NCBI RefSeq assembly: GCF_006345805.1
Contig: NC_043009.1
Coordinates: 56,358,001 to 56,422,000 of the forward strand
DNA length: 64,000 nt
DNA from: Octopus sinensis
Lineage: Eukaryota
Direction: 5' to 3'
Shown here: piece after piece, positions 9,570 to 64,000 of the stretch
Position numbering within the stretch: position 1 is the first letter of the stretch
How the letters are laid out: each line of letters starts with the position of its first letter
Made by a program: the position numbers and the translations under genes
Notes under the pieces: generated by a model
The model's input: only the letters and a program-made list of their open reading frames with translations
The model's database searches: none
What the model was told of the DNA's origin: nothing

Positions 9570-10209
9570 GTGTGTGTGGTGTGTGTATATATATATATAG
9601 AGAGAGAGAGAGAGAATTACTTAGTTAAATTTAACATTATTTGTATATGAAGTTGTTATGACCACCAGGAAAGTTAGTTTTAGAGATGGTCACTGAATAT
9701 TTTATGTAACCAATGAACATCTCACAAAACCAGCTCCACTGGGGCAAAACTCACATTATTGATCATAATTGATTGTAGTATTACTACTGCATTAATCAAA
9801 GCACTCAATAACAACAGTCCTGGTATTTTTTTCTACTTAGCACTCCATTGTGAAATACCTGAAAAGTGGGTGAATTTATTCAAATTTGAAAAATGAAAAA
9901 CAAAAGTTGTAGAGGAAGAACAAAGCTACTAAAACCACAAAACACTGCAATAAGAATACTTTTTGTGTTAATTCAAATGACATTGGAGAGAACTAAAATA
10001 AATGGGGAAAAAATTGTCTGACAACCCAATAGGAATTGATATATAAATGATTTAATATCAAACAGTAAAATTAAATAATTGAATCTACCAAAAAAATAAA
10101 TAAATAAAAGGATACATATTAGAAAATAATATTTTTGATAAGAAAATGCTATACACAGAGGTCTGTATAATATAATAAACCTAAGCAGAACATTCCATAA
10201 TTATTTCAA

Positions 10210-13102: not shown

Positions 13103-14521
13103 TCTAATGAGTCCAAAGACTACGTCATGCGCCAGTGTCTCCTTTGACACAGTTTCTACAGTTTGATGCCCTTCCTAACACCAATTACTTTAGAGCAAGA
13201 AGTGAGTGTGTTTTATTATTTTATAATCACCAACTCTAGTGAGGTTCAATGCAACTTTCAAGACTATAAACCCAATGGGAAGATGGTTTTTATTCTAAGA
13301 AATGAGGGGTTAAAAGTATGGGAGAGGGGGTCAGAGCAGAACAGATTTCTTACTATTGAGGAACTGTATGACTACTGACATTTTAGAAGAGATATGTGTG
13401 TAAGAGTGCTCATGTTTTCTTATCTGGACATAAACTGATATATATACATATGTAGTGAATCTTGCATGCATGAAGTGGATTCGATCCACCATAGCCAAAT
13501 TTGAATTAACACTGCAACAGAACTGTTCCCCTGGTGGAACAAAGGTTTTTCTCTGACAGCAGTTTTACATTTTCCAGATGCCTTTAGCTAGGCCAAAATA
13601 ATGTTTTCACTACTTGACCCTTTCTAACCTCTTCTATTTCACCAAAAGCTAGCATAGAGATAACAAGACCACCAACTAAATCTATTGCTCTCAATGATAT
13701 ATCTATCCTTCTAGATCTTTATATAAGCAAGCACACCCCAAGCAAAAATCAGTTCGCACAGTCGTGACAACTCAATGAGGTCTGGCTGACCAACCTTGGT
13801 CAGAGGGAGAAATGAAGCTTACTGTCAGACAACACCCAACACTTCTTTCTAGCTCTAAAATCTCTTCTCTTACAACATCATTCTATCTGTCATGGCAACT
13901 ACTACTAAACAATGAGGAGGATACAAAAACAAACTTTACTTCGCATCCTTTTGGATTTATCATAACCTGCCCGTCAAGGCATGGTATTGTAACGTAACGG
14001 TAAATAAATACTTTCTTAAAACATCATGCATTGTTCATCTTTCACATCCTACAGCATGCAATTATAACAACAAATCTTTACCGTCACACCTGCTGACTCC
14101 AACAGCAATTCATAATAACGTTTACCAATCAATTTCTCCCGTTACAATTGGTAACCTAACTACACTTATTAAAAATTAAATCATTACACATATATCACTA
14201 TAATGTTTTAACGTCCACTATCCATGATTGTATGAAGAAGATTTTCTATGGCCAGATCTCCTTCCTCTCACCAACCATCACTTGTTTCCAAGCAAGGATA
14301 TATTTTCCCATGAAATGGCATGGTTTCATGGAAGATTGGAAATCGATGACACCACTTGTATGACAGTGACATTTGCTTACAGCTATCACGCCATATCAAG
14401 ATAAGGAGACACAAACACACACATACACATATACACACATACATACATATACAAGAAGCATCTTTCAGATTCTGCCTACCAAATCGACTCACAGAGCTTT
14501 GGTTGGTCCAGGGTTATAATA

Positions 14522-15637
14522 CAGTCCCATGCAAAAGTCTTCAGTCACTTTAAACTATTGTAAATTTCTACTAATTGCCAACTTATAAGTGAATGTTTCA
14601 CATTGCACTTTTTGCAGATGAAACACTGGCCCTGTTAGAGTTATTTTCATACCTAATTATTATATTTTGAATGAGAGGGGAAGATGCGAGACAACCACCA
14701 AAAATGGCCATGCAAAAGTTTTCAGCCGCTTCACATAAACCAATCAAGATACAGTGTTTTAAAACAGAAAAATGTCTATGATGAAAATTTATTACATAAT
14801 GTTCATTTCAAGAAGTTCTAATAAGTAAGAATTTGTCAGAAGGCCTTCAGGAAAGAAAAACGACCTACATTACATGATGAAAATGGTGAAATTTGGAAGT
14901 AAGAGTCTGATGTTTTGGGAATACATAAAAAGTGATGGTTCAAGAAAGTTGGTTAAAATTGATGGTAACTTGAATAGTGCCAAGTACATCCAGCTGCTGA
15001 AGGACAATTTGATACCAGACTTGGATGAAGGTGAGATTTTTCAACATGATGGAGCTCCATGCCACAGATTGCATGCAACACAACAGAGTCCGGCTGATGA
15101 AGGTGTTACCATATTGAAAGATTGGCCAGTTCAGAGCCCTGACTTATATATCATCAAGCAAATGTGGACTGAACTAAAGAGAAGAGTTCATCAGAAGAAT
15201 CCATGCAATCTTGAAGAGTTGTGGGAGCTCATCCACAGACAATGGCATCTCATACCTGTGAAAATGGTGAAGGATTTGTACACATCTCTTCTCAGGTGCA
15301 TTGAAGCAATTATTCAAGCTAAGAGAAGCCACACAAAATATTAACAATGTATAGTAACTTCTTGAAATGAACATTATGTAATAGATTTTTGTTATAGATA
15401 TTTTTCTGTTTTAAAACACTGTATCTTGATTGGTTTATGTGAGGTGGCTGAAAACTTTTGCATGGTCATTTTTTATGGTTATCTCACATCTTCCCCTTTC
15501 ATTCAGAACCCCTACTACAAAATATAATGATTAGGTATGGAAATGACTCCAACAGGACTAATGTTTCATCTGTAAAAAATGCAATGTCAAACATCCACTT
15601 ATAAGTTGGCAATTAGTAGAAATTTACAATAGCTTAA
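14522..15637 (+). mobile_element. Tc1-family transposon with ~300-bp IR/DR-type TIRs, internally deleted (C-terminal catalytic half only, ORF 14874-15344)
   Basis: TA at 14520-14521. Left TIR ~14522-14820 is the reverse complement of ~15350-15635. The DR CATGCAAAAGT-TTCAG occurs at ~14528 and ~14709. Motifs FVRRP, FQHDGAPCH, WPVQSPDL. Confidence 0.92.
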
Positions 15638-52837: not shown

Positions 52838-53440
52838 AAAATGGCGTTAACCTCTCACACTGACAAATAATTTTAAATAATATTGGCAACAAAACAAAAT
52901 ACCAGAGATTCACGGTGACCAAAAAGTTCGGCAGTAAATCCCGTTAGCTTCCGGTTTTTTTAACCATTTCTATATTTGACTTTATAATTTTCTGTTCCTT
53001 TTGAATTTAAATTAGAATAAATATAAGAATGTTTTATTTTTGTCGATATTTTTTTTTAAAGATTATGAAAATATATTTCTTTTCTCGCGAACTAATTTTT
53101 CAATCACATATGTAGACTTATTTACCGCAAAAACTGTATTAACTGTTCGCTAATTTGACTGAACTCGATCTATATTTTTTAAGTGTTGATAAAATTTCAA
53201 CATAAACTGCATAAATTCTTAAAGCGCATTTTATCTTAAATAGAAAAAGGAAGTAGAAGCGAGTGTTATTCTATTAAAATAAATATATAATGATTCCAAG
53301 AATTCAAGTGAACTTCTTTCCTTAAAATTTATTTCTTTACAATGAAAGGGGGGGGGTATTTCGAATCACGTGTGCAAACAATATAGACCAATGAGAACGT
53401 CAGTCGGTGATTCTGCGTAAGCGCGAGCCGTCTACGTCAT
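52838..53440. promoter_or_regulatory. Putative bidirectional promoter between Rab30 and PCF11
   Basis: Locally CpG-rich. YY1-like CGCCATTTT on minus (52838-52846); ETS ACCGGAAG on minus (52948-52955); E-box CACGTG (53367-53372); NF-Y consensus GACCAATGAG (CCAAT 53388-53392); two CRE/ATF half-sites ACGTCA (~53397 and ~53434). Confidence 0.65.
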
Positions 53441-53702
53441 TGTCCTGCGTCTCTTAGCTGTTACTTCGACTTCTCTTGAAGATGTCTAACAGAATTATAG
53501 CATTGTGAAAGAGAACAGCAACACTAAATATATATATCGCTACTAGAAAGTAATTTTGCAGGCAGGAAGTTTTTTTTTTTTTATATATTTTTCCAATATC
53601 TATTTTTTATGGAGCAGTTCTGAAGTTGGTGAAATTTCTCCTTATATCAAAAAGCTTTAAACAGAAGATTTCACTAGACTATATATATATATACATGAGA
53701 AA

Positions 53703-53861
53703 ATGGCTGATGCCGAAGAAGTGATAGATAGCTACCGTTCGTCTCTTGCTGACTTGACGATTAATAGCAAGCCACTAATCAGTATGTTGACCATGCTTGC
53801 CGAAGATCATATCCAGTATGCCCAACACATCGTTCAGCTGATCGAGCAGCATTTACAAAAG
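53703..53861 (+). CDS. PCF11: PCF11 (cleavage and polyadenylation factor) exon 1, N-terminal part of the CID domain, 53 codons
   Basis: YRSSLADLTINSKPLISMLTMLAED matches the PCF11 CID motif Y.SSL.DLT.NSKP.I.MLT.LAEE. Donor AAG|GTTTCG, phase 0. Confidence 0.95.
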
Positions 53862-53957
53862 GTTTCGCTTTCTACATTTTTTTTTTAGGATTCTATCAAT
53901 TCGCCATCGGATTTCAATCAATATTTTTGTTTCTTTTTTTTTATGTTTATTCCGCGA

Positions 53958-53967
53958 CCGCCATCTT
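53958..53967 (+). promoter_or_regulatory. YY1-like motif near the start of PCF11 intron 1
   Basis: CCGCCATCTT in a CpG patch about 100 nt into the intron; mirrors the minus-strand YY1 motif on the Rab30 side. Confidence 0.45.
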
Positions 53968-56759
53968 TGGTTTTGTGTGATTGAAATTTGAGTGCGAAAT
54001 GAAAGGTTCTCTTATTATTATTATAATTCTACTTTATGTGTTTGTGTTTTTTTTTTATACTTTTTCTCCTTCTTCTTCCAGTAATTGTATTGTGTAAATT
54101 TTCTTATTCCTTCCTTCCCTTTTTTTTAAAATGCGAATCATATAAGTAAATAATTCAGTATAGTATAACTCCTTGATTGAATTCATAATATAGGTCAGTT
54201 AACGTTTGTTTCATGACCTCTAGTTGTAGCTTTTTTTTCTCCTTTTTCCGTATATAATATTTTATTTCAAACTGATTTATAATTTAGTGGAACGTTTAAG
54301 CTGTCATAATCATGATCATTTTATTTATTTATTACTATAGGTTCAAATATTTCTTATAATGCTTAACGTTTTTAGTAAATAATTCAATGGACGACAGACA
54401 CACAGTCTTCTCTAGTTTGAGACGAGTTGGGTGTAAAACTACAGAATTAACAATCTGAAACTTGTTACACAACCATAAGTAATGATTCAGAGTTAAATAC
54501 GAAAGGCAATTTTTGTAGAAACTGAAACAGGATTGTACACACACTTGGTTTAGTAAGCAATAATGGAACTAATGTATTCTTAATGTTAAGCATACGGATG
54601 GATTTGAAAAAGCTTCAAACAAGATCGATTCTTTTTTTTCTATTCATTTTAGCTTTGCAAAGAAAGCAACGTTTTTAGAAAATTTGCAAATCCTCGTGAT
54701 TACAAAAGAATCTTCTCAGTTCCATCAAGGTGTTTTGTATTGCTCTATGGTTATTTTATTTAGATTAACGCATTCGACATAACAGATTGGTGTCCCACCC
54801 GACTCTGCTACCCTGTAACTGTATTTTTTTAAATGCAATATTTTTTTAATTGTTAGTAATTTTTGACAAAATTAGAAGCAAAAGTTGGGGTGGGAGCATT
54901 GGCACCCTCCTCCCTGTTACCGCTAATTTCTGTAGCTTTAGCATTTAATTTATTTATTTTAATGATTTATGTTTGAAACCCTTACATTCGCAAACCCATA
55001 CCCTCGAAAAAGTATTTCCATACAATTTTATTTTGAATTTTTCCCCCCTAAAACATATCTAAACTCTACGAAATTCCTTTTAAAATATGCTGTTTCAATT
55101 TGTAGTTATTCCTAATTTTCATCTTCCCTCTTATTGCGAATTTTAGTGTGTAAATCGTTATTAAATGCAATTCATTTACTTGCTTTAGATAGGATAATTA
55201 ATTATTCAGTTAATTTTCGAAGAGTTTTTAGTTATTTTGGAACGGCGTGTTTCTCGTGTACTTAAATCTCTGAATTTTGTGTGTGTGTATTTAATTTACT
55301 TCTATTGCCAATATTACTCCTATTGTCTTTCCTATTATTTTCACATTCTTCTAAACTTTAGTGTATATGTACTTCGTGGAAGGAATCGCGTATGTTTTAG
55401 TATTCTAAGTTATTTCTACTAATATCATGCAATATGGTGCCACTGGAGTCGAATATTTAAAACTGTGTATGTATATGTGTGTGTATATATATATAATAAT
55501 GATTCGTGCTAGTTTGCAATATTTTTTTAACCACGCGGTGTCTGAATTTTTATCTTCGTTTGTATGACTTCATGTGTAGTGTGTGTATGTATGTATATAT
55601 ATATATGCATCCACAAATATGGTATACATGATACACAGCCTGTGAGGTGGGAGTAAAAGTAAATGAAGGATGCTTTCTTTTTTTTTTATACGTTATTACG
55701 CTGCATTTTATTTATATATATATAATTTAATCCGTCCATTTAGTGTTATTTCGTAATCATTTCATGTCTGCACAGGTCTTTACACTATTAGAGTATATGT
55801 AATATATGTCTACCGTCGTAGCAGTTATCACTGTCGAACGCGTATGAAAGCCAAGCTTGTACAACTTGTGACATACAATGGTTGGCTTGTGCAGGGTGGA
55901 CTGTAGCCCGAACACATTGATTCGTTTTCTAGTCTGTTAGATAAGTTTTTATTCTGAAACCCCCCAAAAAATTACAGGAGATAAAACGTCAGTAATGAAT
56001 TTCAGAATGGGCATAGCATATAGTAGTCAAAAAAAAAACAATTTTTCGATTAGCATAATTTTATTGGGTCAATATTTTCGTCTTGACCCTATTGGGTTAA
56101 TGTTGTATACTATGTGAAATTTAGTTTCATCCGTCTCCAGTTAGTATTTTCTTTGTATTTGTTTTCCCTCCGACAACTAAACCACCTCCATGTTCTTGAA
56201 ACCTCCTTGTTTAGTAGTAACTGGGCGGGGTTTCCGTTAATAGACCTTTCACCCTCTCCTTCCCCGAATTTTATTCTAATTAGCATGGTTGTTTCCCTTT
56301 TATCACTTTAGCACAATAGAAATAACTCGTAGAAAACGTCAACTCTGTGTGTATATATATACACACACGATGTTGTAGTCTTTGAAGTAAAGGAGCGGCT
56401 CTAGAGTTAACTGCAATGCAAGATTTGTTTTGTTTTTACCATTATCTTATGGAAAGCTTAAAATTCGTCTTTAAAAATTGTACTTTTTGTAATGACATAC
56501 TAACTCTCCCCTTGCTTGCCATTAGAGGTTCGTCATACAAAAATATTTAAAAGAATTTTCCGATAATCTTTTTAATCTTTGTACATATAAAATGTCGAAC
56601 ATCATACTGGAGTAGACTAAAAGCGAACAAATAATCGTTATAATTGGCAGTATCAAATAGCAGGATGTCTTTTTTTATATTTATTAGTTATTTCATATAT
56701 TTTAAGTCTTTAGTTGTTTTTCCTAGTAGCTATAAAAATGCACTTTTACAAGAAAAGAA

Positions 56760-57034
56760 GGCATTCTTTCTATATAACTCGACAAAATCAAAACATTTCA
56801 CTTCGGTTATTTTCGTGGGTTGTGGAGTATAGATATAACGAAATTATGCCAGCCATGTCTCATTTTGAACTTGAAGAAAAAAAAAGCCTTGCATATTTGT
56901 CCTTACCTGTTTCATATATGTATGTAAAATTCGCAAATTTCCAAGCAGAAAACAGAATCGAACTGTCATTTGCTTCCACGGAAATACCCGAAGTGAAATG
57001 TTTTGATTTTGTCGAGTTATATCGAAAGAATGCC
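56760..57034. mobile_element. MITE (275 bp) with 59-bp TIRs and a perfect 8-bp TSD, in PCF11 intron 1
   Basis: Arms 56760-56818 and 56976-57034 with 3 mismatches; TSD GAAAAGAA at 56752-56759 and 57035-57042. Confidence 0.9.
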
Positions 57035-60000
57035 GAAAAGAAAAATTTATCTGGATAGCCTTTTTTTTAAAGGTAAAGTTTACTTTGATCTCCATCTTAC
57101 GGTTATTATGTAAGTTTGAAAACCTATTTAAAAGTTGCTCTGTATATAAAAGTTAAATAAAAGATCTGGAAATACCTTTAAAAAAATTCTTTGTATTTGT
57201 CACTGCTGGTTATTGATAATTTTGATTTTAGTTTGTATCACTTTGTTCGATATTTTATGTACAAAGATTGAAAGGTTACAGTTTTTCTAAAGAAGTTTGT
57301 CAAAATACATTGACTGACTCGTAATTCTCTCTTTAGAAAAAAATGACGGGCGAAAATATCGGGTATTCTCTGACACAAAATTGACAAATTGCTTTAACGA
57401 AATATTTTAATTTTAATAGCTTGAACCAAGTTGTCATTTTAAAAAATAGATAACCTGGTGGTGAGTTTGAGAGAGAAGTTAAGAAAAATAAAAGCTTTAA
57501 TTATGGTTGGCAAATCCAGCCATATGCATGCTTTTTCTTCATTTCACTTTCTTTTCTATGTTCATTTGTGGATTTTATATATTAAAGCACATGCTAATTG
57601 TCATTCAGTCCCTTCGTATGATTAAAATTAAAATCGAACAAGAGGTAAGCTCAAGTTCTACTAGCCTACGATCTTGATTTAGTTTCTGTTAAACTTATTT
57701 TACACAGTTCAAGATCAGTGATTGGGAGAATATATATCTTAATCATATTGATGTCTTAGATTGCTGCAAGATATATTTGATTGTATTGCCTTGGCGTGTT
57801 ATTTGCTTTGTCTGCTCCAGGTGGCTTTAGTTTTGTGTAACTTGTTTAGGTAATGTTCTGACATCTAAATTGGAAACAATTTACTAATATCTTACAGAAC
57901 AAGAAAATGTTGCTGTTTCATTTAGTGTTCTTTTTTTTCTGTTGCAACAAGAAGTGTTACGACCTGTTCGGGTAAATCCAGTTAAATGCTTCACTGGTAT
58001 TTTCTATGTCAGATAGTAATCTGGTAGTAGTGTTTCAAATTGTCATAGTTGCTGGGAAAACAAACAAACAAAAAATACTTTGTCTCTAAAAACACTATTT
58101 CCATCTAAATTTCAGAAAACATCTTGGCAACTTCTCTGCTTTCTTTGCAGGAAATCTTTTGCCTGCTTGTCTTGTGTGGACTGACTTAATATTGAAAGGT
58201 TTCTGTGCCAATCCTCAAATTTATTCTGTACTTTTATGGCTTAAGAGAAATTTGAAAGTGAACTTAATTGTCAATTTTGGTTAAAAGAAATGTTTGGTAG
58301 TTAAAACTTTCAAAGTTAAGCATTTATACTTTTGTATCCATACGCTTATATATGGTTAAAATGGTGGGGGTGGATTGCATGGCAAAAAGTATACATTGAT
58401 ATTTATAGGTTAAATACCAAAGCCGCATGAGGTTATGCATATTGGTTAACAGTGTGGAATGATAGATATATTTTAGTATCTTCATGTGTTCGGGTTCAAT
58501 AATACAAGCCTATGTAACAATTGTTATGGACTTAACAGCTTCAGGTGAACATTTGATTCTAGATTAGAAACAAGTGTGGTGGGTGGTTTGGTTTTGAATC
58601 ACCCATGCTTTGGAAATAATTTTGTAGAACCTGTGGAAATGTTTTTCACAGCAATTTTCTGTTCACATATAGAATATTTTATTGTAGTTAAACTCTAGGG
58701 TTTTTTTTAAAAAATCTTAGTCTTCTTTGCAAGTATATGTTTAATCATTAGTTTTTGTCTGCTTTTCCCTTATTACCATTGATTGGAGGAGTTTGAGACA
58801 GTGTTCTACAGCTGGATGCCCAGCTGGCTTTTTTTTTTTAGAGTAAGGTACTATACATCATACAAATTTACAAGTTGCTATACTTTTCGCGTAGGTCATG
58901 AAAACCATCTCTGCCAGCTGAATGATCTCAATTGTTTTAACATTTGTTTTTCCATACTTTCATGAGGAAGAGATTTCTACAGTCAAGGTGCACTTCTCGT
59001 TTCTGAGCAGGGTAGTAATCCCTCCCAATCTACTAGACAACAAACAGTCCAGGCAAGGTTATACTGAGCCTTTTGTTTACAGAGATCACACATGTCAAGG
59101 AGCCCAGCAGACTTTCACATTAAATTGCAAGCAGACATATTTATCAGCTGTGAGACTTGTTTCCAGTCAGTGAACATATGTGAAGACTGGGGAAATAATT
59201 AGCTATATTTCATCTTACATCTACCAGTTTCATTCAAAAGGCATTAGATCAGCCAACAGCAACCACAGTTGGGCAGGATCACTCACCACGTTCTGAAGCA
59301 TGATGAAGAGCACTTGCCCAAGGTGCCATCCAGTGGAGTAAGCCAGAAAGCACTGCTTATAATATTTTGTGATGTATATATATGTGTTTGTCATTGATTG
59401 TTTGTTAGAATTAACTCTAGAAAATATATAACCTTTTGTGTCCATCACATGGTGATGGCTTTTGATGTTACTCAGCTGAACTCTCATTAACACTTAGCTG
59501 ATGAGTATTAATACATTCACCATATTCCACTTTACCTACTTATTAACACCAAACCAAAACTGAAAAATATTCAACTTTTGAATTAGGCTTTCGAGCTATT
59601 TAGATAACTGTTTTGTGACATTAACAGTTCCTGAAAATATCACTTCTAATAACTTGCTGCATGATATTGAATAATCAACACATAATTTTATTAGTATTTA
59701 CTTTGGTCATTCTAAATGTTGCTGGTGTTTTGTGACATGGACTCTGGCTTTTGAGATAGTTTTATTGGGGTAGAGATTTCCTTGCACTTTTGGGGGTCGT
59801 TCACTGTTGAGTTCCAATTTTTCCAACACAAGTGCACTCTCTTTTACAACTAGGTGTACTCGACTGTTTTGAGAGCAATATTTCTAGAACAAGCTGCTGG
59901 CACTTTGCTTGTCTTTTGCCCTAAACATTCAGGCCATTTGTTGGGGTCCAGTTTTCATCTGCCTCCTATTCTCACTTAGCTATAGAATAGAGGCAACCTT

Positions 60001-61267
60001 TGTATCCATGGTTTATATAGTTATGTATAAACCCCTTGGTAGCCACTTTAAAATGTTCAAACAACGGTTTGTTTGGAATGTCAAGGATTAGAACCTTTTG
60101 TCCAATCAGAGACTGCCAGTAACTTAAAATCCACCCAGTTCTTGCTACACCTTGATAAGTGATAGAGAAGTGACTCATGATAAAAAGGTCATTTAGCCAT
60201 AAAAATGGAATCTCTAAGTAAAATATGTACATTTCAAGCTATCTAGGACCAAGCACTGAATAAGAACTGACACCGAATAAAAGAGATTCTGTAATTCAGC
60301 TCCTTTGGTATCACTGGTGTGATAAAACAGTCCACCCTGTATGATATGCAACAACAAAGCCAAAAAGTATCATCAATCAATAACTTAAACCCTTTAGACT
60401 TGCACTACCTATGGACACTTAACTGTCCAGCTAATTGTTCACGTCATATTTATTGGGAGTTAGTATTACATATATCAACTAACACTTAGCCAATTCCCAC
60501 GGCTTTGTGTTTGTAGTTGTGGGCCTAGGCTCAGTACCATGCAGCCCACATTCTATATGTTCTTTATGCAGTCTACCTTGTGCATAGAGCCTGAGAAACT
60601 TTGGATGCCTTTAAGTCAACTAGGTGTGTGTCTATGTATAGGGATAAATTTTAAGAGTTACTATTTCCTTGATGATAAGTTGTAACTATTTCTAATAAAC
60701 GTTTAAGGATCATTGGTATTGTTCATTTGAAGTGTGTGTGAATCCTATACAAGCTAAGGTAGGTAAGTACACACTTGAATGGTTCTAGTTTGGGTTATGG
60801 TTTGAGTATCAACCATTTAACAAAATTGAATTTTCCAGAACTAGATTAAATTGGCTGTGTTCAACAAATTTTATCCCTAGTAAAACTTGAATCATTTGGG
60901 TGTGTATTTCACTCTTGCTTTTTGTGGAGTTGGGAAGCAATATGCATTTTGTATGTGTGTATTGAAGGTGCTTGGTATTGATTCTCATGTTTTGATGAAT
61001 GTTCAAGTAATTTTTGTGGTCATGTGAACTTTTGTGTGAGTATGGCATGATGGCGTATATGACAGTAATATTCTTTATTTTGTTGAAAATATAAATTAAG
61101 TGCATTTGTGATAAGGGGTTACACTTGTTTTTATCCAATAAGTTTGGATTTTGTATGTGCAAACACAGATACATATGTAAATTAATAAACTCAAAACTTA
61201 TCTTAATTACACTTGTGTGTAATTTTCTTTTTTCTCTTTCTCTTTTTTTTTTTTTTTTTTTTTCCAG

Positions 61268-62100
61268 ACAGGATGGTGACTCAGTAGTAGAGTGCTGGCA
61301 GTTGGGGTTATATTATTACTATTAGTATCACAAGAATGAATGCATTAATTAGTTTATGAAGTACGATAATTACATATCAGAGGTATTGATTAGTTATGCT
61401 GTAAATTTTACCCAATAGATTATTTATGAATGGCTGCCGCTCCATCCAGTAAATAATTGTTCATAATTTTAGTCTTTAGCTTGATGAAGAAATGGCTGAA
61501 GAAATTTTCTCCCTTGAAATTATTTTATCATATATAACTCAAAATGTGATTTCCATTTACTACGGAATCATTTTGTTTAACCGTGGGTTACTGTGAAAAT
61601 ATCTCAAAATGTTAAATCAGTATCCCAGTAAAGGTAAAATTGAGTATTAATACAAATTAAGAACTTTTCATTGTAGTAAAGGTACCCTCCTTGGACAACT
61701 CATGGGCTATCTGTTCTGTTAATAAAAAGTATGTCCAGATAGATTGCTGATGTATTAATAACTTGTCTTTGAAACAGCAATAAACAAAAGTTTATAATTA
61801 TTGGCCACTTGAACCTTAAATTTACTGTCTTGAATTACAGTATCGGAACAAAAAACCCGTGAAGCATAATGCGTGTGTCTAAGCATGTAATGCAGATAAA
61901 AAAAATAATAAATGATTAATGGGTTATCTTTGAGTAGAAATAAAATGAATTTCATTTGAATTGGCTGCTTTTACACTCTCTTACCCTGAGAAGCTACATC
62001 ATCTCAAGCTGGATTCAGCAAAAGTATCAAGAAATTTCAGCTGGCGTTTGTTGAACAGTTAGAAACTGTATTAGTTTATAAGAATAAATTATTGCCAGTC
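61268..62100 (+). other. PCF11: Candidate alternative terminal or poison exon in PCF11 intron 1
   Basis: ~44-nt polypyrimidine tract plus CCAG (61222-61267); in-frame stop after 3 codons; AATAAA at 61721, 61779, 61907 and 62083. Confidence 0.5.
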
Positions 62101-63348
62101 AATATGTCTTGCCTTCTGAGTACTTAACATGCAAGTTTGTTTTGTTTTTATCATAAATGAAGTTTCAATTTTGAACAGATGCAGGTTTAGTTGATCAAGT
62201 TGGCTGGCAGCATGTTTTTCAAAAATTTCTATTTTTAAATAATTAGCTTACTTTTGATGCTAATTAATTATTATTTTAACATATTGTGATTATAAAGTTT
62301 GAAGTTTATGTCGCCAACTTTCTCTAAACTTGTTTCTTTCACTCTTGAGAGGTTCCCAAATCAATTAGATGGTTTACTGTGAAATGAATGTTCTTTATAA
62401 GAGTTATTGTAACAACAACTCTGAATAATTTTATGTTTGCTGCTAATGTTGGTAATTCATTTAATAATACAAAATCTGATATAAATTAACATGTATTTTA
62501 ATTGCAAATCATAAGATTGTTTGTTTTGTGTTGTTACAAAACTCTTTGCCATCTATTTTGGGAATCTTTATTGGGTTTATTTTGCCTTAAACTGGCTAAG
62601 TTGTATCAATGGAATCCATTCATTTTGCAAAATTACGAAGAAACCCTGTTGTGATTCACTGGACAAGAATCATTTTCCATCAGATAGTGGAGCTTGAAGA
62701 AGGAGCATCAAAAGAAAAGCTGTAGGAATGAAGATGCTACACACTTTCTTAAATGAAGATGGTTTTCTGATTATGCATTTACATGTGAAATATAGGGCGG
62801 TGTTATTTCTTTTACACCGTGCTGTAACAAACATTAGAAATTGATAAACAGGTGGAAAACATCGCTCCTGCTGATCATTGATATTCTTGGTAATAAATAC
62901 TTCAAAAATATTTTTGTATCCTGGATTTGTCATTCTTTGTTGGCCATTTACTAGGTCATTTCTGACCTAAGGAATGTATCTTATAGTAAGCATCACGATT
63001 CCTTCCAAAGCACCTGTTAAGTTCCATTCTTTTGGATGTCAGGTAAGAGTTTGGACATTTCTTCATACTCTTTATATTTCAATTATATTTTTAAAGTAAG
63101 CTGTGTAATTTGGCTCCTTGCCAATATTTAACAATTATTGACATGTGAATTATTTCAGTGTATTTTCAAAGTCACGGCTTACTCAAAACACTGAACTTGG
63201 TCACGCTAGTTCATTTATATAAACTGAATAATCGAGCATTCGGTTTTTTCCCCTCTCCCTCAGAACTTGAGATTATGGTGATTTATTTTGTGTTCACATT
63301 TCCAAAATATCATATTTCATATTTTGAGTCTGTTTTTGTTCTTTTCAG

Positions 63349-63477
63349 GTGAAACCATCACAGAAATTGCCAGTTCTATATTTGATTGATTCGATAATAA
63401 AGAATCTGGATGATTGTGAATATCCTCAGCTTTTCAGCAAAAATATAGTTGCTATATTTTGTGATACTTTTGAAAAG
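63349..63477 (+). CDS. PCF11: PCF11 exon 2 (VKPSQKLPVLYLIDSIIKNLDDCEYPQLFSKNIVAIFCDTFEK, 43 codons)
   Basis: Translated by hand. KLPVLYLIDSIIKN is the CID signature. Acceptor TTCTTTTCAG, donor AAG|GTTAGG, phase 0/0. Intron 1 spans 53862-63348 (9487 nt). Gene continues beyond the window. Confidence 0.95.
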
Positions 63478-64000
63478 GTTAGGATGAGTTGCAGTGATTT
63501 TTATGTAGATTTCTAAACCTTAATATTCAGATGGGTGGGTTTTGTGAAAGGTAATTTGGATGCTCTTTAGTTGAATAAAGTTTAGCTTTTTTTTTTTTCA
63601 ATTTTGATTATCTCTAATTTTCAATTCTCTTGTATTGATTGCTTTATTAAAGAATATATTTCAATGATTTTGTGATGTGCTTTATACATCAGATGTTTTA
63701 CATTGAACAGAGAACTTAAGTTATCAATTAATTAGTTTGTAAAGTTACTTGGCTATTTTTCTATTTTGAGTTCTTAGTACTGTGCCAAGTAGATTTGCTA
63801 CACATTAATTCATTTGCTGAATATGTTTGTAATGGAAAAGGTTTCCGAAATGTAAGAAGATTGACAGACTGACTATTGGGTTTGTATTGCTAAATATACA
63901 GGTTTTTTTGGTATATAGGTGGATGAAAAAACCAGAGGATCCATGTACAAACTTAGACAGACTTGGCAGATGTTTTTCCCTAACCAGAAACTATATGCAC

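Follow-up and report, generated by a model that had tools for sequence, protein, structure and literature searches.

The 64,000-nt stretch of Octopus sinensis DNA analysed here (contig NC_043009.1, positions 56,358,001 to 56,422,000; hereafter the window) is AT-rich animal DNA (~68% AT) whose last 10 kb hold the 5′ end of an orthologue of PCF11. Our focus is on the first intron of this gene, which contains a putative cleavage/polyadenylation, or poly(A), site; all features described in and around PCF11 lie on the plus strand, with coordinates counted from the first base of the window. The coding part of PCF11 exon 1 (53703–53861) begins with an ATG at 53703, spans 159 nt, ends in phase 0 and encodes 53 residues, MADAEEVIDSYRSSLADLTINSKPLISMLTMLAEDHIQYAQHIVQLIEQHLQK (MADAEE...EQHLQK), that make up the start of the CID domain, its N-terminal part. 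This exon is 92% identical to exon 1 of cephalopod relatives. Exon 2 (63349–63477; 129 nt, 43 residues) has the same length and phase as exon 2 in fishes, and exon 3 begins at 63919, which leaves an intron 1 of 9.5 kb (53862–63348). These boundaries come from tblastn with a human PCF11 query, and the junctions between exons 1, 2 and 3 are matched exactly by a 7.2-kb cuttlefish RNA-seq contig (L017, run SRR8281669). Both of the full-length cephalopod mRNAs that we recovered, L017 and L018, start at exon 1 and join it straight to exon 2.

Read-through open reading frames (ORFs) of exon 1 in relatives were found by a protein search with the exon 1–3 peptide, and the contigs that carry them were then retrieved. 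The sequences compared are 20 kb around exon 1 from an ENA assembly (L001), short Logan contigs (L002–L011), a more distant mollusc (L012), the annotated PCF11 gene of Acanthosepion pharaonis with its introns (L019, GCA_903632075.3, CAHIKZ030000709.1), the fishes Amia calva (L020) and Carassius carassius (L021), and the amphioxus Branchiostoma belcheri (L022) and a B. floridae hybrid (L023). Two proteins annotated as PCF11 of A. pharaonis (P0039 and P0040) are 100% identical, over the aligned part, to the full-length cuttlefish protein, which identifies A. pharaonis as the species behind the Logan contigs. L001 and A. pharaonis are close relatives, with 98% identity in the coding sequence of exons 1–3. 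Identity between the window and these two is 81% over exons 1–3 and drops to 44% (15/34) at fourfold-degenerate sites, so that neutral positions are near saturation.

Intron 1 contains one strongly conserved block. When the whole intron was compared with that of L001 (blastn, word size 7), window 62025–62147 matched L001 14604–14733 with E = 2.7e-24; this was the sole significant match, and except for one short collinear stretch the rest was noise. The block also has a match in A. pharaonis (L019 13856–13985, E = 2.9e-20), and it is the only strongly conserved block of the 9.5-kb intron relative to these two decapodiform genomes. In a gapped alignment, the conserved island extends over 61983–62151, and its core (62080–62131, AAGAATAAATTATTGCCAGTCAATATGTCTTGCCTTCTGAGTACTTAACATG) is identical to L001 at 47 of 52 positions, which is above the identity of the exons. 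The columns that are invariant in all three species in a three-way alignment include TTCAGCTGGC, TGTATTAGT, AAGAATAAAT, ATTGCCAGTCAAT and TGTCTTGCCTT. Downstream of the island lie two weakly conserved collinear patches (62320–62385 and 62410–62440), at ~65–70% identity.

The island reads like a poly(A) site region. A UGUA upstream element (62067–62070) is invariant in the window, L001 and A. pharaonis, and a conserved AATAAA hexamer (62083–62088), the only one in the core, falls inside the stretch of 47 matches in 52. It is followed by a conserved CAGTCA (62096–62101), whose two CA dinucleotides at 62096 and 62100 occupy the presumed cleavage zone, and by a conserved GU/U-rich downstream element (62104–62150; TGTCTTGCCTT ... 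GTTTGTTTTGTTTTT). All four elements are kept on the sense strand in the three species, and the position of CA 8–13 nt past the hexamer fits what is generally known of poly(A) sites. An earlier note on this DNA had described TGTA motifs and, for the last of its hexamers, a CA ~12 nt downstream and a GU/U-rich tract; in the sequence we find TGTA at 62067, CA at 62096 and 62100 and a GT-rich tract at 62104–62150. By an ad hoc poly(A)-context score, which combines the number of UGUA motifs, the top GT-rich 20-mer and the number of GU trinucleotides, the hexamer at 62083 ranks fifth among the 170 AATAAA or ATTAAA hexamers in the window. The conserved hexamer lies 8.2 kb past exon 1 in the window, 4.5 kb in L001 and 3.8 kb in A. 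pharaonis, and in each case 1.3–1.7 kb before exon 2.

Several other readings of the island were tried and rejected. As coding sequence it offers ORFs of 21–34 residues at most (none of at least 35), which diverge between species, and its alignment contains indels of 3, 6 and 2 nt. As a structured RNA or microRNA it gives fold z-scores of −0.84, −0.67, +0.31 and +2.08 (both strands, two species), none significant. The island matches no Rfam family, and the region 53000–64000 has no match at E ≤1 apart from three weak microRNA-like matches elsewhere. It is not a repeat either, being present in one copy per locus by nhmmer with no further copy in the window. A 21-base pattern from the core had four matches in JGI metagenome contigs, all in bacterial-type sequence and without similarity in the flanks, which we attribute to chance. 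The conserved TTCAGCTGGC (62036–62045), which includes an E-box-like CAGCTG, precedes the conserved hexamer by ~40 nt and may serve either as an auxiliary upstream element or for binding at the DNA level.

The exon-1 donor upstream of this intron is very weak. Its sequence, AAG/GTTTCG (53859–53867; the slash marks the exon-intron junction), scores −3.75 with a position weight matrix (PWM) built from approximate human frequencies and used only for ranking, and 186 of the 619 GT dinucleotides in intron 1 (30%) score higher. The earlier note was right to call this donor weak, and the GTTT type turns out to be common to cephalopods, fishes and amphioxus. With the mRNA mapped on the A. pharaonis genome, the orthologous donor AAG/GTTTTA is the weakest of 11 that could be resolved, at −6.1 versus −0.9 to +6.8 for the others. 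AAG/GTTT is present in all seven retrieved genomes with a readable donor, namely the window, A. pharaonis, L012, the two fishes and the two amphioxus. The intronic side reads GTTTTA in A. pharaonis (donor at L019 10157–10165), B. belcheri and the B. floridae hybrid (L022 and L023, 2151–2159), GTTTTT in Amia and Carassius (L020 and L021, 2166–2174) and GTTTAT in L012 (~10151–10159). In L001 the donor (10157–10166) reads AAG/GGTTTT, with one G more than in A. pharaonis; this is probably a homopolymer error in the assembly, and otherwise a shifted donor.

The intron itself occupies the same codon boundary in cephalopods, L012, fishes and amphioxus. Exon 1 ends in phase 0 with ...LQK in the window, ...QIAK in Amia and Carassius and ...QLNK in amphioxus, and exon 2 is 129 nt long in the window, L001, A. 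pharaonis, Amia and Carassius. By comparison of these genomes, AAG/GTTT is a deeply conserved weak donor, common to molluscs, amphioxus and fishes. We know of no description of this donor in PCF11 across phyla.

These features are familiar from vertebrates, where PCF11, the limiting factor in 3′-end processing and termination, autoregulates through an intron-1 site, called PAS1 or IPA (intronic polyadenylation), that determines which poly(A) sites are chosen across the genome (Kamieniarz-Gdula et al. 2019, PMC6458999; Wang et al. 2019, PMC6428223). The 5′ splice site of mouse Pcf11 intron 1 falls in the 3rd percentile (Wang et al., PMC6428223), and tandem AATAAA hexamers have been described for human PAS1. 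In our own comparison of Amia and Carassius, the sole conserved island of intron 1 (L020 3179–3267, L021 3211–3294) centres on TGTGACAATAAA, after which comes TTTTGTC...TTTATTTCCC; the hexamer lies ~1.05 kb past exon 1 and is in tandem in Carassius (3220 and 3243), in agreement with the published PAS1 (PMC6458999, PMC6428223). Intron 1 of B. belcheri contains a single AATAAA (L022 2619), kept in the B. floridae hybrid (L023 2814), with a GU-rich tail, TGTACTTGTGTG, 470–660 nt past exon 1. This AATAAA and its tail are a candidate counterpart of PAS1, to which the conservation lends weak support because both amphioxus genomes align over much of the intron.

The likeness between the cephalopod site and vertebrate PAS1 covers the gene, the homologous intron (phase 0 after the exon-1 lysine, then a 129-nt exon 2), the very weak AAG/GTTT donor and the presence of one conserved AATAAA island with a U/GU-rich tail in an otherwise unalignable intron. 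There are also differences. Where Carassius has tandem hexamers, the cephalopod block has one, and it shares no detectable sequence similarity with the fish or amphioxus blocks. It is also placed 3.8–8.2 kb past exon 1 and 1.3–1.7 kb before exon 2 rather than ~1 kb past exon 1 as in fishes. Finally, the window, unlike vertebrate PAS1, also has a strong acceptor upstream of the site and a conserved donor-like motif downstream of it.

The upstream acceptor was the headline feature of the earlier note, and it is indeed strong in silico, with no conservation of its sequence in L001 or L019. The tract described there as ~44 nt long consists of 43 uninterrupted pyrimidines (61223–61265) followed by AG (61266–61267), and it is the longest pyrimidine tract on either strand of the window, which has eight tracts of at least 20 nt on the plus strand and five on the minus strand, the next longest measuring 30 nt. 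In a simple scan, all 25 bases before the AG at 61267 are pyrimidines, compared with 20 of 25 at the true exon-2 acceptor; the earlier note had likewise called the tract longer than the one at that acceptor. Judged by pyrimidine content, 61267 ranks first among the acceptor-like sites of the intron, with no AG in the 18 nt upstream; by eye, a branch-like CTTAT lies ~65 nt upstream, and there is no AG between it and 61266. Splicing of exon 1 to 61268 would give ...LQK-TGW and an in-frame TGA at 61277–61279 (56 residues), and splicing from 53861 to the tandem start at 61272 would add 17 residues before a stop, both as predicted. Early in-frame stops of this kind are uninformative, being expected in any frame of ~68% AT DNA. 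No donor-like site scoring at least 2 occurs in 61277–62100, and one lies 8 nt inside the exon that would start at 61268.

The tract region (61223–61267) could not be aligned with L001 or L019. Two long T-runs lie 470–600 nt before the hexamer of L001, ending in ...CCCAG/ATTTGA (exon start at 14077) and ...GACCAG/ATTGAA (14199), both followed by immediate stops. At the same place A. pharaonis lacks the T-runs and has only a moderate GCTCTTCCCTTTCC...AACCAG/ATTGAT, with this candidate acceptor at L019 13427/13428 and the hexamer at 13923. This speaks against the L001 T-runs as positional analogues of the 61267 acceptor. The A. pharaonis sequence has 22 sense-strand pyrimidine tracts of at least 20 nt in 39 kb; together with the absence of the T-runs, this indicates that long pyrimidine tracts are common and short-lived in that lineage. 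We also considered the tail of a transposon or retroposon as the origin of the T-run in the window, and discarded it, as 60900–62300 has no copies elsewhere in the window.

The same unevenness is seen among the hexamers. The earlier note had listed four AATAAA (61721, 61779, 61907 and 62083), all of which are present, and had overlooked a fifth at 61939. When the intron is compared with those of the cephalopod relatives, the last of them lies in the conserved island and the other four (61721, 61779, 61907 and 61939; 61721–61944), like the acceptor tract, do not; their context scores, ranking 31, 57, 39 and 59 of 170, are average. When the intron was simulated with a second-order Markov model, five AATAAA within 370 nt arose in 0.8% of the runs. 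The real sequence is patchier than the Markov model, and the window holds three other clusters of five or six AATAAA when both strands are considered. The intron has 11 hexamers in sense and 23 in antisense, which by our own arithmetic is about the ratio predicted by its T>A skew.

Downstream of the island, a strong motif resembling a 5′ splice site, TGGATGTCAG/GTAAGAGT...TGGACATTTCTT (63033–63065, junction 63042/63043), is conserved in L001 (15824–15858) and L019 (~14975–15010). Its core CAG/GTAAGAGT (63040–63050) scores 7.1 with the donor PWM, which places it second among the 619 intron GTs and above every donor resolved in the cuttlefish gene. In the three cephalopod genomes, the motif lies 960–1160 nt past the hexamer and 300–520 nt before exon 2 (306 nt in the window). 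It may end an alternative 5′ exon or a long poison exon as their donor, or be a U1 site that modulates the upstream poly(A) site. Two further ideas about the motif were rejected. A hairpin around it has one compensatory pair, is equalled by 178 of 500 shuffles and takes different minimum-energy folds among the species, and is not significant. A recursive splice site (YAG/GTAAGT) would need a pyrimidine tract upstream, which is good only in the window, the corresponding sequence being A-rich in L001 and A. pharaonis.

Taken together, these observations lead us to lean, without great confidence, towards the view that PCF11 intron 1 holds an evolutionarily maintained cleavage/polyadenylation site that acts as a premature termination brake on PCF11. 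The core idea of the earlier note, a premature poly(A) site in PCF11 intron 1 behind a weak donor as in vertebrates, fits the conserved 62083 island and the homologous intron position. With the hexamer at 62083–62088, cleavage would be expected near 62097–62102. The extremely weak exon-1 donor would make intron 1 slow to commit to splicing, and for this reason a fraction of polymerases could be cleaved and terminated at the site before exon 2 is joined. The resulting short transcripts would encode at most 53 CID residues and a few junk codons. Use of the site would be expected to rise with 3′-processing activity, including that of PCF11 itself, to give negative feedback as at vertebrate PAS1. 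What the sequences show is the conservation, the layout of a poly(A) site, the weak donor and the homologous intron position; cleavage at the site, the response to PCF11 and the kinetic competition are inferred. Two routes to the site are possible, read-through from exon 1, which would make a composite terminal exon, or splicing to 61267, which would make a skipped one, and the skipped route is no better supported than the other. Both classes are established for intronic poly(A) sites (PMC3708835), IgM being the classic composite case, and the window offers both, through read-through past the weak donor or through the strong upstream acceptor.

A similar logic is known from another gene for a 3′-processing factor, CstF-77 (CSTF3), and its Drosophila counterpart su(f), in which a large intron with a weak donor contains a conserved site made up of UGUA, hexamer and GU-rich element (Luo et al. 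2013, PMC3708835). Splicing and cleavage are in kinetic competition there, and the loop sets a precedent in vertebrates and in one invertebrate (PMC3708835; Audibert and Simonelig 1998, as cited in PMC7471841). The gene and the intron differ from ours (intron 3 in human), and the fly and vertebrate sites have likewise not been shown to be homologous. A weak donor upstream and a strong donor-like motif near the poly(A) site also recall U1 telescripting, the suppression of intronic poly(A) sites by U1 snRNP (PMC7471841, PMC3708835), which modulates premature cleavage through elements of this sort, except that the motif in the window lies ~1 kb downstream of the hexamer; we take the likeness as no more than a lead. 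In the searchable literature, we found the PCF11 loop described for human, mouse and zebrafish, and no report from an invertebrate.

Several points weigh against a maintained poly(A) site. Since L001 and L019 are such close relatives, the conservation amounts effectively to two lineages, and the block was not found in the distant mollusc L012 by blastn (word size 7), by a pattern search allowing three mismatches or by nhmmer. An nhmmer profile of the cephalopod block also had no match in the Amia, Carassius, amphioxus or L012 loci; what directly connects the phyla is thus limited to the weak donor and the position of the intron, and the poly(A) site itself may be either convergent or of common descent. 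From the hexamer density, we estimate that a 123-nt AT-rich block would contain AATAAA by chance in ~13% of cases, and the conserved CAGCTG within the island makes a DNA-level regulatory role possible. The site is 8.2 kb past exon 1, compared with ~1 kb in fishes, and the poly(A)-context score and the donor PWM are both ad hoc. Finally, 19 distinct predicted short products were all absent from a protein collection by exact-sequence look-up. Three of these were for the window (the product ending in TGW, the 17-residue variant and the read-through product) and 16 joined a cuttlefish-type exon 1 to the best acceptors of L001 and L019. The collection includes 16 PCF11 variants from cuttlefish RNA-seq, all of at least 220 residues; the window species is apparently outside it, its genomic read-through ORF also being missing. 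This negative is weak, since a small ORF may go unassembled or uncalled, above all when its RNA is rare or unstable. When the N-terminal peptide served as the protein query, the cephalopod transcripts were not retrieved either; their cluster representative lacks the N-terminus, so absence from that search says little.

If exon 1 were spliced to the 61267 or 61271 acceptor, as the earlier note proposed, the transcript would carry a skipped terminal exon of ~840 nt that ends at the 62083 site or at one of the upstream hexamers. The unbroken pyrimidines before the AG, the 18 AG-free nucleotides and the branch-like CTTAT all speak for such an exon, as does the lack of a donor of at least 2 in 61277–62100, which leaves nothing to turn the segment into an internal exon. 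L001 and A. pharaonis, moreover, share a candidate CCAG/ATTGA acceptor 470–495 nt upstream of the hexamer, with an immediate stop (IEIL-stop and IDIL-stop), and the segment that can be aligned between them starts ~40 nt before the candidate AG. We nevertheless regard the skipped exon as rather unlikely, as its acceptor is not conserved in sequence between the window and L001 or L019, the long T-runs of L001 are missing at the same place in A. pharaonis, where tracts of this kind are ordinary, the predicted junction products were absent from the protein collection, and published accounts of vertebrate PAS1 present its transcripts as arising by intronic polyadenylation with no splicing to an internal acceptor (PMC6428223, PMC6458999). 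On balance, it seems somewhat more likely than not that the tract is a neutral T/CT microsatellite and that the four upstream hexamers are chance matches in AT-rich sequence, none of them taking part in PCF11 regulation, whatever the island does. Neither the tract nor any of the four hexamers is conserved, T-runs come and go among close relatives, the contexts of the hexamers are average and comparable clusters occur three more times in the window, although a neutral origin has to accommodate the longest tract in 64 kb, one that ends in CAG, and a hexamer density rarely reached in the Markov simulations.

Other explanations concern the island itself. It could be conserved for some other non-coding role, for instance as an enhancer within the intron or as an element that regulates splicing, with the AATAAA being incidental. 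The conserved CAGCTG 40 nt upstream of the hexamer and the chance frequency of AATAAA (~13%) are compatible with this, and the weak patches and the donor-like motif further downstream would allow the last 1.4 kb of the intron to be a regulatory region. However, the best-conserved 52 nt start at the hexamer and span the cleavage zone and the GU-rich tail, the UGUA is invariant, and vertebrates have a proven poly(A) site in the same gene and intron, behind the same weak donor (PMC6458999), for which reasons we consider an incidental hexamer unlikely. Still less probable, in our estimate, is a separate transcript architecture in which a short RNA, either upstream or nested, has its 3′ end at the island and CAG/GTAAGAGT ends an alternative first exon or a poison exon that is spliced to exon 2. 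The perfect donor-like motif, kept in the three cephalopod genomes at similar distances from the hexamer and exon 2, is what such an architecture would explain. Against it, the L017 and L018 mRNAs start at exon 1 and join it to exon 2, of the 15 cuttlefish protein variants listed, none begins in the way that initiation in exon 2 would predict, and the region has no ORF or RNA family.

Some further features of the window and of the gene lie outside this argument. Within-window repeats cover 1.2% of intron 1 compared with 16% of positions 1–53000; the stretch from 18 to 26 kb is also repeat-free, so this difference may mean little. An ORF at 14874–15344 is a relic of a DDE_3 transposase (Pfam E = 6e-8) and stands between inverted repeats at 14550–14817 and 15356–15637; by these marks, 14550–15637 is a decayed DDE-type DNA transposon. 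A minus-strand ORF at 987–1544 looks transposase-like by eye and has no Pfam match. The annotated A. pharaonis proteins P0039 and P0040 (1179 and 1241 residues) are far shorter than the 1912-residue RNA-seq product (P0036), and judged from these lengths the public A. pharaonis PCF11 gene model is incomplete. Four cuttlefish variants (P0025, P0026, P0028 and P0033, from at least 16 contigs) terminate in ...KRMCTDQGMELQLDRHLKTKEDLRWVYYLSSRC at ~560 residues, which suggests that another truncated form of PCF11 arises later in the gene, outside the window, through retention of an intron or use of an internal poly(A) site.

It is tempting to speculate that the PCF11 loop is ancestral to bilaterians, that chordates and molluscs have retained its crippled AAG/GTTT donor over more than 500 million years, and that cephalopods have elaborated it into a three-part switch of acceptor, poly(A) site and a downstream U1 site that tunes the choice between them; we offer this tentatively and think it somewhat doubtful as a whole. 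The locus also carries a warning, in that its most eye-catching features, the long tract and the hexamer cluster, have the weakest support, and it illustrates a search strategy in which a single conserved island is sought within an otherwise saturated intron. If the putative site is real, it would offer a specific element open to testing in animals whose RNA biology is unusual, and the conserved cephalopod site, together with the shared AAG/GTTT donor, would move the origin of the PCF11 loop to or before the protostome-deuterostome split.

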